Source: Basidiobolus meristosporus CBS 931.73
Lineage: Eukaryota > Fungi > Basidiobolomycota
Direction: 5' to 3'
DNA: 64,000 bases
Assembly: GCA_002104905.1 (NCBI GenBank)
Contig: MCFE01000016.1
Coordinates: forward strand, 1 to 64,000
In this document: positions 29,261 to 34,537 of the stretch, one piece after another
Numbering within the stretch: position 1 is the first letter of the stretch
Layout: each line of letters starts with the position of its first letter
Translations under genes and position numbers: made by a program
Notes under the pieces: model-generated
Database searches by the model: none
Told to the model about the DNA's origin: nothing
Seen by the model: only the letters and a program-made list of their open reading frames with translations

Positions 29261-30118
29261 ATGGGGGATTGCAGGCGTTTTCTCAGAATTGACGATTGGA
29301 TTTTGAGTATAGCCTGCAGCTGGTTTCTTGCTCGCGAGGATATTGATATGCAGACGTACATCCCACGGGATGTAGGGAAGAGCGTATTTCAAGAGGCAGC
29401 TAACATCGAGGATCATGCCTTGGTACACGTGAATATACTGGCCTAACAGGGCCTGCAGGCTGGGTCGAAAACGTGCTACAAACAGATGATTGTGGCTGAT
29501 ATGATCTCATATGAGTTGATGAACATACAGGCAACCAACCAAGAATCGAAAAACGGCTTTGTTACTTTTCTCCGAGGGATCTATAAAGTTGGCCGGTATG
29601 CTGAACAACCCAAAATCAAGGTCTCCCCTTCATTACCTCTACTGTAAATCACCAATACTCTACTTTAATTCACATCCAATCTACCCTTATTTTATTAACC
29701 CATTATGTCACTAATGCTTCAGTGGTTCTTAACGATTTGTCAGCTTGACCGTAATAATAAGATACAGAAGCTTCAGGTCAACGAGGCAACTCCAGAGGAT
29801 TGGGAGGAGTGGGTTTACCTCCAATCCGATGGTTCCTTGGGGAAGTTACCAGAAATCACGACGTCTCTTCAGGAGATTCGCACTTTTGCTTCCAAAGAAC
29901 CAAAAGCCTTTACACTCTCCGATTATGCCAAGCTTGAAAAGTTGTACCGATATCTTCAGAGCTCCCATGTAGATGTGACTGATAGTTATCTGACTCAATT
30001 AAAAGATCATCAGCAGAAGGTAGCCAGAGCCAAACATGATGGATTCCACTTCCACCCTAATCTGGAGCACTACAAGATGAACACCAGGTCTAGTGGAGTC
30101 TCACTTCGCGGTCATTAG
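29261..30118 (+). CDS. Hypothetical protein, multi-exon; 5' and 3' ends uncertain
   Basis: Protein-like exon ~29735-30118 (LDRNNKIQKLQVNEATPEDWEEWVYLQSDG..DYAKLEKLYRYL) preceded by an in-phase exon ~29453-29620 (GLQAGSKTCYKQMIVAD..QPKIK). The start is ambiguous, and a competing minus-strand ORF (29147-29428) overlaps the 5' part. Confidence 0.45.
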
Positions 30119-30787
30119 ATGCTAGTATTGTTAGCAGGGTTGGCGGGTTTATGTATCGTACGTAAGGATAATCTAGTATATGTCTATTTAGTGACTGCCC
30201 GATTTCACATCATGCTCTGTAACGCATATGCTACTCCACCTTTTGTTCATTGAGGAATAAACCTTATGGTCGTATACTTGATCGAATGACGATTTGTGCT
30301 AATGTGCATGACCAATGGGGCGATTTGTACGTTAAGCTCGGCTCAATATACGGAATATAGAGTTCAATTGGATTGTCGATAAGCAGCCACATAATGTCCA
30401 CATCCCAACGGAACAACACGAACAACAAGCTACAAGATCCGAAACAGAGTGCTTCATGGAGAATACCTGTTATAAATAGAGTGGAATCCATTGAATGAGA
30501 AAATCCCCTTGTGTGTCGAGAGTTTGAAGAACCAACAGTGCTTTTGTATACACATGACATAATATCCAGATCGGAATGGATGGAACTCGTTGAAAAAAGA
30601 TCAGAGGAAGATTTCCGCTTGTTTCCAAGTTAGTTTAGCATGGCGAGCAGTCGTTGGCACGGTAAGGAATTAAGAGGTCATGTGGGGTTTCAGAATCATT
30701 TCCCGAAGTTACAACTCGACTTATTTATAAGTTCGTCGTGGCGGTTGTTAAGCTCAAACAAAACACATTCACTTTTACGAAGTTAGT

Positions 30788-33700
30788 ATGGTACTTCCTC
30801 CTCTTGGACCACCGGGAAGAGACCGTAAATTATGGCTGATACACACGATTACCGCTTTGGCAACGGTCGGATCCCTTACTGCACAACAATCCTATGCTGC
30901 TACCCAGATCGACACGCCATCAAAGCCTTCTGTTAACGACATTTCCACACCATCCCCCAACCTTGCTGCTAATCAGGCCAGTGTTTCGAACTTTGGGGTC
31001 GCCCTAAATATCCAGTCCAAAAGCCAAGCAGTGAAAAAGGTGGGACGATCCGGGAAAACAATCGTCAAGAAGGTGTATAGGCCAGGTAAGATCATACGTA
31101 AAACGATACCCAGGCCTGATACGAAGAAAAAGCGCGTTGATGGGAAAACGGCCCCGAAACCCTCTCAGCAACCTAATGCAGTGGAGAAGCCTATTGAGGT
31201 CGAGAATCCCATAAACAAGAAAATCCTTTTACCTGGCAAAGATGCCCAGAAGGAGATTAAAGATTCCACCAAGGAAAAGAAAGTTGACGAGGGCAAAAAA
31301 CCTGAAGCCACACCTGAGAAGATTTCAAATGGGTCCAACGAATCTTCGCCAAAGCAGGTAGTTAGCACAGCCGATGCTACAGTGAAAAATACCAGCGACA
31401 CCATGTCGGCCAATGAAAAGAAGGAAAGCACACCCAACAATGCAACTGAGGGGAAAAAGGAAAGTGGGAAAGGGGACTTGACGAAAACCCCTCCTGAAGA
31501 AAACAAGGTTGTTAAACCCGACACGAATATTGCTGGCAATATGGAAGAGTACAACGGCGGTAAAAGGGACACGACGACAATCTTGAAACAGGAACCTTTG
31601 CTGGATAACAAAGAAGTTTTATTGAAGACGTATATCCCAGGGAAAACGCTTGTTACGAAAGTGCCAGTAGGGCCTACGTATGCTACTAAAAAGACTCTCA
31701 TTCCTGGACAAATTACATACAAAGACGTGGAGGTTCCGGGGAAGACGATAGTTCGGAAAGTCCCTTATGGCCCTACTTACAAGTCAAATCAAGTCGTCAT
31801 CCCCGGCAAGAAGCTGGTTCAGAGAGTCAAACTCCCTGGAGAGACACGGGTTCGGAAAATACTATTGGGACCGACTTATGGTAAAAAGAAGGTTTATGAG
31901 CAATCGAATGGAGAATCAGCCTCTGGGGTCGGCTACAAGCAAGTCAAGATACCTGGCGAAGTTAGAATAAAACGTGTCAAGTCTCAACCCTTATACGCAT
32001 ACGAGGACATGACGATCCCTGGTGAATCGAAGTACAAGGTAGTTCGGGTTCCAAACAAAACCTTGGTCTACAAAACTGCTACTCCTGCGGAATACACTAT
32101 CCAGAAAGTGCTCGTTCCCGGCAAAAAAGTCATTCAACCAAATCCGGGTAGTACCAAAGATGTAGTCATCAAAAAATATATCTCTGAAGAATATGGCTTC
32201 AAGTTTACCGAGACGCCTGGCAGTTATGTTATCAGAAGAAAACTTACTCCTGGTCAAAGCATCAAGAAAAAGGTTGTGCGCAGTCCTCAATACGGCTACA
32301 AAGTAGTTAGCGTGACTGGGGAGCCAGTGAAAGTCAAGGTACGTGTTCCTGGTGAGATTATTGCCACGAAGGTTCGAGTACCTGCCGAATATGGCTACAA
32401 GAAGGTCTACATCCCGGGAGTATCCACTATCAAAAGATTTAAAGTAGTAAGCGGCTCAAAGAAGATACCTTATCTCAAAAAGCCTGTATACAAATATGAA
32501 AAGCATCTGGTTCCTGGCGAAAAGTCTATTAGAAAGTTCCGCATACCTGGTCAGACTATCAGAAAAATCGTCAAGATTGAGCCGAAATATATTTACAAGA
32601 AAATACCAAGAAAAGTCAACTTTGTCACCAAGAAAATCAGAGTACCAGCCAAAACTTTCACAATCAAGGTGCCGACAAGAGAAGAGTACGGGTATACTAG
32701 GTACCTCTCCCCGAGTGGGTTCAGAATCGCGAAAACCCGTATCCCTGGAAAACGAATTGCCCAAATTACTCGTATCCCCGCAAGGTTTGGCTACAATATA
32801 ATCAAGCAACACGCACCGCCAAGATATAGAAAAATATATGTCCCTGGAAGAACGATAGTACAAAAAGTACGGATTCAAAGGGATGAAGTTACGGCTATAG
32901 ACCTTCCACCAGTCCAGGAGTATGTAGAGGAATACTTTGACAGTACAGATGGTATCTACAAACACAGACTCCAGCGTTGCTCTTGGGATATTCGTCAGAG
33001 CCAGTATGACTGCAAGATCAAAGAAAACTCTGTCGATGAGACATTAGAGTCAAGCCCAGATTTTGAAGAAGAAACGTATGTCCCACCTGCGCAAAGATAC
33101 ATTGAGGAATATGTTGATAGATATAGCGGTGAGACCAGTCGACATCTCAAAGAATGCATTTGGAGACCTGAGATCAAAAACACTGTTTGCACTACAAAGG
33201 ACCTAGAATTACCAGATACTTCAAGCCAAAGATATTTCGAGCCTGGAACCACGGTTACTAATATATATCTGCCCCCTGACCGCGTATACATCGACGAATA
33301 CTTGGACAAAGCAACCAATTCGATGGAAAGAAGACTACGAGTTTGCACGTGGGATATCAAAAGCACAAGCTACAAATGTAGTAGCAAGGATATGGACGAC
33401 AACAGCTTGGCGATTTCGCCTGGTACCAAGGAATCGACAGACGAAAATATGGGCTTGAAGGTTACTACAAAAGCCCAGGCTTGTACATCAACACTGGGTG
33501 GTGAATGTGAAATCAATCAAAAGGAGTTCGGAAACTTCAAGCCACTGTCTCTCAATGGACCAAACGATCCCGCGGATATTAAATTGTATAGCGGTTTGAC
33601 GTTACAAGACATCTACTGGCCAGAGATAGATCCAAACGCTCTTGTCGCAGATAGGGTCTTTATCTACGAGTTTGTGGATCAAGCCGTGATGCAAACGGAA

Positions 33701-34537
33701 AGACGGGTGGTTGTATGCAAGTACGATGCCTACTCGCAGTCATGGACGTATGCTAGCATTTCAGGTGAAATACTGTCCACACCTCTGAATATGGAAGAGA
33801 CCAGCGAGGACGATGGCACGATAGTTTTGGTGAATGGGAAAACGCAGGAAACGGTGTACATCCCTCCGAAAAAAGAGGGATACACCATTCAACCAGCCGA
33901 CAGAATATACATTCAAGAGTACTTTGATGAATCAGTTGGAATTAGTCATCGTCGATCAAAAATATGTATATATCTCACGCAGCTACAAAATTGGAAGTGC
34001 CAGGAGAAGACCGAAAAGATTGATAACGCTTTCACTGCTACCGTTCATCTTCCTCCCATTGAAGACAGAAGCATGGCAGGTATGGATGCTGGCTCCAATA
34101 GTTATGAAAACATCCTACAGCAAGAAGCTATAAGCACCAATCCAACCGACGCTGGGCAAAATCAATACGAAATATGTACACTAGATGCTGATGGTAAATG
34201 GAAATGTACCCCTAGCAAAGACCAATCAAAGAACCCTCTGGAATCCGCATCCATCGACCTGAGCTTTATGAATAACTTGATACTGCCGTATGAAGGTTCC
34301 ACTGAATACCAAAGGGAGTATCCTAGGGAAAATAACAACACCCTTGACAACATATTCAAGTACGATTCAAACAGCTTGGACAACGAAATTTCGATGATAA
34401 ACCAAATGGACGAGAACAGCATCGAGCCTCAGGGTTTAACTTCTCAAGTCGACGGTTTAGAAGGCTCTTTTGATGGACTTGCAGAGCTGTTGGATTTGGG
34501 AAATTCAAACATGTCAGATAACCTCCATAATCAATGA
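30788..34537 (+). CDS. Large intronless repeat protein (1249 aa), probably secreted or surface-exposed; family not recognised
   Basis: Single 3750-nt ORF. N-terminal hydrophobic segment LWLIHTITALATVGSLTA, a Lys/Glu/Ser/Thr low-complexity region, a Lys/Val/Pro-rich repeat array, five acidic ~43-aa modules, and an acidic Asn-rich tail. Confidence 0.9.
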   Translation: MVLPPLGPPGRDRKLWLIHTITALATVGSLTAQQSYAATQIDTPSKPSVNDISTPSPNLAANQASVSNFGVALNIQSKSQAVKKVGRSGKTIVKKVYRPGKIIRKTIPRPDTKKKRVDGKTAPKPSQQPNAVEKPIEVENPINKKILLPGKDAQKEIKDSTKEKKVDEGKKPEATPEKISNGSNESSPKQVVSTADATVKNTSDTMSANEKKESTPNNATEGKKESGKGDLTKTPPEENKVVKPDTNIAGNMEEYNGGKRDTTTILKQEPLLDNKEVLLKTYIPGKTLVTKVPVGPTYATKKTLIPGQITYKDVEVPGKTIVRKVPYGPTYKSNQVVIPGKKLVQRVKLPGETRVRKILLGPTYGKKKVYEQSNGESASGVGYKQVKIPGEVRIKRVKSQPLYAYEDMTIPGESKYKVVRVPNKTLVYKTATPAEYTIQKVLVPGKKVIQPNPGSTKDVVIKKYISEEYGFKFTETPGSYVIRRKLTPGQSIKKKVVRSPQYGYKVVSVTGEPVKVKVRVPGEIIATKVRVPAEYGYKKVYIPGVSTIKRFKVVSGSKKIPYLKKPVYKYEKHLVPGEKSIRKFRIPGQTIRKIVKIEPKYIYKKIPRKVNFVTKKIRVPAKTFTIKVPTREEYGYTRYLSPSGFRIAKTRIPGKRIAQITRIPARFGYNIIKQHAPPRYRKIYVPGRTIVQKVRIQRDEVTAIDLPPVQEYVEEYFDSTDGIYKHRLQRCSWDIRQSQYDCKIKENSVDETLESSPDFEEETYVPPAQRYIEEYVDRYSGETSRHLKECIWRPEIKNTVCTTKDLELPDTSSQRYFEPGTTVTNIYLPPDRVYIDEYLDKATNSMERRLRVCTWDIKSTSYKCSSKDMDDNSLAISPGTKESTDENMGLKVTTKAQACTSTLGGECEINQKEFGNFKPLSLNGPNDPADIKLYSGLTLQDIYWPEIDPNALVADRVFIYEFVDQAVMQTERRVVVCKYDAYSQSWTYASISGEILSTPLNMEETSEDDGTIVLVNGKTQETVYIPPKKEGYTIQPADRIYIQEYFDESVGISHRRSKICIYLTQLQNWKCQEKTEKIDNAFTATVHLPPIEDRSMAGMDAGSNSYENILQQEAISTNPTDAGQNQYEICTLDADGKWKCTPSKDQSKNPLESASIDLSFMNNLILPYEGSTEYQREYPRENNNTLDNIFKYDSNSLDNEISMINQMDENSIEPQGLTSQVDGLEGSFDGLAELLDLGNSNMSDNLHNQ

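Follow-up and report, generated by a model that had tools for sequence, protein, structure and literature searches.

The first 64 kb of contig MCFE01000016.1 of Basidiobolus meristosporus CBS 931.73 (assembly GCA_002104905.1), which form the window analysed here and whose positions are also contig positions, contain a single-exon gene for a 1,249-amino-acid hypothetical protein built around a strictly periodic, polycationic repeat array. The repeat architecture, its conservation within Basidiobolus and the absence of other relatives are directly observed. We consider it quite possible, though at somewhat less than an even chance, that the product is secreted, specific to this lineage and part of the wall or matrix, and that its polycationic, beta-rich repeat array binds polyanionic partners. 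The gene and its array lie as follows.

30788..34537, + strand: gene for the repeat protein (from the list of open reading frames [ORFs]; 1,249 amino acids and a stop codon, single exon, hypothetical protein).
31631..32878, + strand: repeat array, amino acids 282-697 (iterated hidden Markov model [HMM] and autocorrelation; 12 units of 33 amino acids plus a terminal half unit).

The window is typical intron-rich eukaryotic DNA and poor in ORFs, with only ten of at least 200 amino acids, and the ORF at 30788-34537 is by far the longest. The public annotation of the assembly calls the identical single-exon model. Because a frame of 3.75 kb stands in such an ORF-poor setting and has both a syntenic ortholog and a paralog in Basidiobolus ranarum, we regard the gene as real; it is a conserved orphan restricted to Basidiobolus.

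Unit starts were placed by the iterated HMM at amino acids 282, 315 and 348 and, after a 6-amino-acid insert, at 387, 420, 453, 486, 519, 552, 585, 618, 651 and 684. Each 33-mer is made of three 11-mers of the common form h-K-K-h-x-h-P-G/P-x-x-x, and the unit consensus reads RVPGKTIxkKV / pIPpEYGYKK / VxIPGkxtIKKI. Conservation is highest at Tyr17 (90%), Pro3 (85%), Gly4 and Lys10 (82% each), and positions 2, 7, 11, 13, 17, 19, 22, 24, 30 and 33 are hydrophobic in 62-97% of units. The preliminary description of this DNA had located the array at 31615-32880 of the same ORF, essentially where the HMM finds it, and had read it as short, alternating, strand-like units. Building a repeat HMM confirmed that the repeat is regular and upheld its strand-like character, with beta-branched or aromatic residues and Pro-Gly at fixed positions; the true unit, however, is the 33-mer of three 11-mers.

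The periodicity greatly exceeds chance. Peaks of BLOSUM62 autocorrelation are restricted to multiples of 11 (lags 11, 22, 33, 44, 55 and 66); the z scores for lags 11, 33 and 66 are 7.9, 13.9 and 10.1, and lag 12 gives z = -1.1. Barring the single 6-amino-acid insertion, all spacings between successive xP[G/A/N] landmarks are multiples of 11, and ten consecutive units run without an insertion or deletion. The motif [ILV]PG, which had been counted at about 14 turns, occurs exactly 14 times in amino acids 276-698 (at 283, 305, 316, 338, 349, 388, 410, 443, 520, 542, 575, 586, 652 and 685), whereas 5000 composition-preserving shuffles averaged 0.76 and never exceeded 5. Over the same 423 amino acids, Lys and Arg number 96 and Asp and Glu 23, for a net charge of +73 and an isoelectric point (pI) of 10.4, in keeping with the earlier remark that acidic residues are few and the array strongly cationic. 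Val and Ile make up 21.7% of the array, Val, Ile, Tyr and Thr about 37%, and Pro 9%; acid-base dyads number 5 (1.2 per 100 amino acids) vs 24 base-base dyads, KK dyads reach 5.7 per 100 amino acids, and VPV occurs once.

A word search returned only two relatives, both hypothetical proteins of B. ranarum. The first (P0002) is the ortholog, a single-exon product of 1,540 amino acids whose gene is syntenic, being preceded by the same RasGEF, G-gamma and 135-amino-acid genes. The second (P0003; locus L002; K7432_015417; contig JASJQH010002086.1) is a paralog cut at the contig end. The start annotated for K7432_015417 (L002 1-120) is spurious, as it takes an ATG from a different frame and links it via a 44-nt 'intron'; the true frame runs past the contig end, so P0003 is a 5'-truncated fragment. 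When 1.84 billion representative proteins were searched exhaustively with a HMMER profile, only the two Basidiobolus clusters scored below 1e-10. Five weak repeat-level matches followed (E 3e-6 to 7e-4), one from the ascomycete Trichophaea and the others metagenomic. These are short 'V-x-V-P-G-x-T'-like or other Pro-punctuated repeats, with an 11-residue period in P0004, P0005 and P0007, and no Pfam family was found in them; judged by sequence, they are probably unrelated and their likeness, confined to the motif, convergent. In the literature on Basidiobolus wall or adhesive proteins we found no account of this gene.

The array can be matched with that of the B. ranarum ortholog unit by unit. 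Unit number and length are equal in the two save for a single 1-amino-acid deletion, and are also kept in the paralog. Orthologous units are 47% identical, whereas units inside the protein share only 25%. Because of this difference and the retained unit count and length, and because no tandem repeat is present in the array at the DNA level, the array is, on these comparisons, old; it predates the species split and has stayed in register ever since. Between the species, nonsynonymous divergence (pN) is lowest in the cysteine modules of the C-terminal region (0.30) and the array (0.33) and higher in the linker (0.54) and the tail (0.63), with synonymous divergence (pS) saturated at about 0.8.

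The 11-mer is still prone to expand. The gene of the B. ranarum ortholog contains, at L001 10417-10674, a recently arisen tandem repeat with a 33-bp period and 7.8 copies (94% matches) that encodes PGKTIEKNDYT; it lies in the linker just upstream of the old array and is a species-specific expansion of the 11-amino-acid unit.

No family could be found for the protein. With Pfam-A, hmmscan of the whole protein at E <= 1 gave as its sole return a sub-threshold Hyaluronidase_1, and a Pfam scan of the ortholog P0002 gave no family and no IMCp match. Sequence searches of the PDB with a full-region profile and a unit profile produced chance-level matches only (Wnt-5a, E 0.018; DNA polymerase III beta subunit, E 0.8). 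Feature searches of the ESM Atlas with the array and with the C-terminal half produced no usable match, and the Atlas has no model of the protein. The preliminary description could assign the array to no family, and the Pfam, PDB sequence and exhaustive HMMER searches lead to the same point: by sequence, the array belongs to no known family. It had also been likened to bacterial 'VPAEY' repeats, but no such family was found.

Outside the array, the protein divides as follows.

30788..30898, + strand: signal-peptide-like N-terminus, amino acids 1-37 (basic n-region RDRK, h-region LWLIHTITALATVGSLTA, then S-Y-A|A; hydropathy and ortholog alignment).
30899..31630, + strand: linker, amino acids 38-281 (rich in Lys, Ser, Thr, Glu, Pro and Asn, poorly conserved; 29% identity to the ortholog, pN 0.54).
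31052-31135, + strand: short degenerate proto-array in the linker, amino acids 89-116, GKTIVKKVYRPGKIIRKTIPRP (HMM match).
32903..34210, + strand: acidic C-terminal region, amino acids 706-1141 (five full 38-amino-acid modules and one partial, by iterated HMM; pI 4.5, charge -32).
34211..34534, + strand: tail, amino acids 1142-1249 (acidic, poorly conserved; pN 0.63, pI 4.05; polar C-terminus).

In both species the N-terminus has the n/h/c layout of a signal peptide and obeys the -3/-1 rule, which S-Y-A|A satisfies. Apart from its stretch at amino acids 14-33, no part of the protein is hydrophobic, and even there the Kyte-Doolittle maximum over 19 residues is 1.17, below the usual level of a membrane span. 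There is no glycosylphosphatidylinositol (GPI)-type signal, because the C-terminus has no hydrophobic stretch, no hydrophobic window being found outside amino acids 14-33. The 38-amino-acid modules follow the consensus LPPxxxYxEEYxDxxxGxxxRRLxxCxWxxxxxxYxC, in which the C-x10-C pairs are invariant, and the C-terminal region has an additional Cys pair at 899/907. Every one of the 13 Cys is invariant across the three proteins (B. meristosporus, P0002 and P0003), with none in the first 730 amino acids, and nothing like a zinc-binding arrangement of Cys is visible in the modules. Pfam, PDB sequence, ESM Atlas and exhaustive HMMER searches revealed no family for the module. Given the signal-like N-terminus, the lack of a membrane segment and of a GPI signal, and the invariant Cys pairs of the C-terminal modules, the protein probably passes through the secretory pathway, with its C-terminal half extracellular and disulfide-bonded. 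The protein had earlier been called putatively exported, and with a signal-like N-terminus and invariant Cys pairs confined to the C-terminal modules it does look so.

The first 38-amino-acid module begins in register with the 33-amino-acid array and opens with LPPxxEY, which is similar to the IPxEYGY sub-unit. The module is present in 10 copies in the B. ranarum ortholog and 11 in the paralog; the extra C-terminal modules of B. ranarum include a block of about 230 amino acids that is missing from B. meristosporus. In the linker, a dibasic KR site (31562-31567; KR259-260) had been pointed out just upstream of the array. KR dipeptides in amino acids 41-698 are at chance frequency (5 observed vs 5.7 expected) and this one is not kept in the alignment with the B. 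ranarum ortholog, so that we reject it as a Kex2-type processing site.

The Cys pairs and the N-terminus also bear on whether the protein acts inside the cell. It could be an intracellular binder of polyanions (chromatin, nucleolar RNA or microtubules), with an N-terminal hydrophobic stretch that is not a signal peptide and Lys-rich 11/33-mers that serve as a periodic array for binding nucleic acid or tubulin; the 31-32-amino-acid PGGG repeats of tau and other microtubule-associated proteins (MAPs) offer a comparison. A charge of +73 over 423 amino acids, the density of KK dyads, the repeat period with its PG motifs and the moderate hydrophobicity of the h-region all fit such a role. We nevertheless think it scarcely likely, given an N-terminus that in either species is laid out like a signal peptide and conforms to the -3/-1 rule, 13 invariant Cys in C-x10-C pairs with no sign of zinc binding, and the lack of a Pfam match to any nucleic-acid-binding or MAP family.

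The fold, partners and role that we infer for the array protein can be set out as a model. A single-copy gene restricted to Basidiobolus would encode a modular protein that is secreted and belongs to the cell wall or extracellular matrix, in which a cleavable signal peptide would be followed by a disordered spacer and then by a polycationic domain of about 12.5 x 33 residues. Each 11-mer would be a short strand, with Val, Ile, Tyr or Thr at fixed positions and Lys or Arg between them, closed by a Pro-Gly or a Pro-x-Glu-Tyr-Gly-Tyr turn. The strands would build a regular beta-rich superstructure, either a hairpin or meander sheet or a three-sided solenoid; failing that, the repeats would set a periodic binding register. 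With its charge of +73, the array could bind polyanions, which may be acidic wall polymers, negatively charged substrates or the acidic, disulfide-stabilised C-terminal modules of neighbouring molecules, and the regularly spaced Tyr pairs could stack on sugars or undergo oxidative cross-linking.

The strongest argument for order in the array is that unit length is strictly held at only 25% identity, which implies a regular structure or a periodic binding register; such a structure may be a meander sheet, a three-sided solenoid in which every coil is one 33-mer, or a fold that the array takes up when a polyanion induces it. Chou-Fasman propensities over the array favour beta (1.06) over alpha (0.97). 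In both AlphaFold2 models described below, DSSP assigned strands and coil only, at low confidence, and in the better-scoring one all the hairpins have a PG/PA-type turn at their centre, at unit positions 3-4 or 25-26, with the EYGY sub-unit as connector. The strands thus pair around PG turns as in the extended beta-hairpin rod proposed in the preliminary description, but the confidence of the models is too low for them to speak for or against that proposal. A trimeric-fibre prediction from three copies of a 4-unit segment gave no answer (score 0.00) and counts neither way.

Several observations weigh against a secreted protein with a beta-rich array. AlphaFold2 confidence is very low, with a mean predicted local distance difference test (pLDDT) score of 32 for amino acids 270-700 from a 3-sequence alignment and a score of 42 with an in-register repeat alignment (11 gapless rows, consisting of non-overlapping 4-unit and partial windows from the three proteins); neither value is high enough to count as evidence. 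On a charge-hydropathy plot the array lies slightly within the disordered zone (H 0.446 vs a boundary at 0.475) and for that reason may be unfolded when isolated. The h-K-K-h-x-h pattern is not a clean alternating strand pattern. Word searches with pieces of 431 and 212 amino acids found no shorter kin and no transcript-derived fragments. The signal peptide was assessed by eye and hydropathy alone, and its h-region is only moderately hydrophobic; Cys977, finally, has no partner in the module scheme.

The low pLDDT in both runs and the position on the charge-hydropathy plot favour the main rival explanation, that the array is an intrinsically disordered elastomer or entropic spring within a secreted protein, contributing for example to wall elasticity in ballistic conidium discharge; in that case its periodicity would have been inherited from tandem duplications long ago and would not reflect a fold. 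The PEVK region of titin and the VPG repeats of elastin are models of this kind. The composition also fits, the array being rich in Pro, Val and Lys with PG every 11 residues, as does the continuing expansion of the 11-mer as a simple repeat in B. ranarum. Against disorder stand the strong conservation of Val, Ile, Tyr and PG by position, the absence of insertions and deletions over 330 residues at such low unit identity, and the combined share of Val, Ile, Tyr and Thr, which is uncommon in disordered regions; moreover, alignments as shallow as 3 and 11 rows could by themselves explain the low pLDDT. We therefore rate the disordered spring as rather unlikely, though a serious alternative.

A bolder form of the wall or matrix reading is that the 33-residue unit adopts a previously unseen beta-solenoid or hairpin-rod fold, and that the protein is a dipolar fibre whose rod is cationic and whose disulfide-bonded tail is acidic, assembling head-to-tail into a wall or adhesive material specific to Basidiobolus, for example at the ballistic conidium or the sticky tip of the capilliconidium. 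As a whole this proposal is distinctly improbable. If the array does fold, it would be a repeat class without a solved relative, set apart by its 11/33 hierarchy, proline turns and extreme positive charge, and a candidate for a lineage-specific wall or adhesive material of Basidiobolus, which is an early-diverging fungus and occasionally causes disease in humans and animals. Should the array not fold, such strict conservation of repeat length in a disordered polycation is striking. In both cases the protein lends itself well to structural study, although the practical impact is modest at present.

Directly upstream of the gene, a 137-amino-acid ORF (29705-30118, + strand) is 66% identical to the syntenic 135-amino-acid gene of B. 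ranarum and so is better conserved between the species than the repeat protein (38-47%); no Pfam family was found for it. AT skew of the + strand is +0.18 to +0.21 across 30001-34000 and about 0 elsewhere, raised because the coding strand is rich in Lys, Thr, Ile and Glu codons; the same composition yields long spurious antisense ORFs, such as 31165-31722 and 32456-32965 (- strand). No tRNA was seen in the window.

Among known systems, the articulins, alveolins and plateins, to which the preliminary description had loosely compared the array, share with it short V/I-rich, strand-like repeats with Pro breaks that are predicted to be beta or coil. They share with the whole protein a low-complexity medial domain between an unrelated head and tail, and plateins carry endoplasmic reticulum signal peptides (PMC4303705). 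The resemblance holds for composition and ends there. The repeat period of the alveolins, articulins and plateins is 12 residues (PMC4303705), and their repeats are acid-base balanced, with EK/KE dyads and VPV, whereas the array has a period of 11/33, is almost purely basic, with very few acid-base dyads, places Gly after Pro and carries EYGY as a fixed element. The wider epiplastin class is defined by acid-base dyads, set apart in the medial domain by short V/I strings, and by occurrence in epiplast-building protists; epiplastin-like proteins of unclear role occur outside the alveolates, but the class is reported to be missing from early-branching fungi (PMC6212826). The array has the high V+I content of this class and, in its low-confidence models, beta and coil without alpha-helix; B. 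meristosporus, as a zoopagomycete fungus, builds no epiplast.

Membership in the alveolins, articulins or epiplastins was rejected, there being no IMCp match, a period of 11/33, 1.2 dyads per 100 amino acids and one VPV. It would be a looser claim that the protein is an epiplastin-like skeletal protein whose beta-rich meshwork lies beneath or inside a membrane compartment; the V/I-rich strands with Pro breaks, the prediction of beta or coil, the division into head, medial domain and tail, and the platein signal peptides just mentioned would suit it, as would the occurrence of such proteins beyond the alveolates. This too is very unlikely, since neither IMCp nor any other Pfam family matches at E <= 1, the period and the scarcity of dyads depart from a class that dyad enrichment defines, and the conserved modules with their Cys pairs suggest oxidising conditions outside the cell.

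Within fungi, a GPI-anchored or PIR wall protein was ruled out by the missing C-terminal hydrophobic GPI signal and the missing PIR motif: a regular-expression scan of the protein found no PIR repeat Q[IV]xDGQ[IVP]Q. Neither the elastin motif VPGxG nor the STPG motif PGPGxY was found in the same way, and there was no PF07004 match. The proteins with weak HMMER matches, P0004 of Trichophaea hybrida and the metagenomic P0005 and P0007, share the 11-residue period and a V-x-V/L-P-G-x-T core with the array (E 3e-6 to 1e-4). They are, however, simple, near-perfect 11-mers, neutral or acidic in P0004 and P0005 and basic in P0007, and they lack the 33-mer hierarchy, the EYGY sub-unit, the signal peptide and the Cys modules of the array protein.

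Hairpin and solenoid rods offer a structural comparison. They include the choline- and cell-wall-binding repeats (PF01473), the single-layer sheets of OspA and SasG, and triangular beta-helices. As in the array, where strands and sheets are predicted, a repeat comprises about one strand and a turn, aromatic-Gly positions are conserved, exposed sheets are rich in Lys, Thr, Val and Glu, and repeat length is strict. The array differs in having no Pfam or PDB sequence match and no confident model, and no solved counterpart was found by sequence for a coil of 33 residues in three parts that contains three prolines.

For a wall or adhesive role, the closest functional analogy, without homology, would be with the plant proline-rich wall proteins, the extensins and mussel foot protein 1. 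These are secreted, basic proteins with PPVYK, SPPPP and AKPSYPPTYK repeats, respectively, whose Tyr and Lys serve in cross-linking or adhesion. No PPVYK/PPVEK, SPPPP or mussel-type decapeptide motif was found by regular-expression scan of the B. meristosporus protein, and the array, with only 9% Pro, has a longer and hierarchical repeat (3 x 11). Like them, it is made of short repeats in which Pro, Val, Tyr and Lys abound, and it constitutes a new repeat family inside a familiar kind, the repetitive secreted structural proteins.

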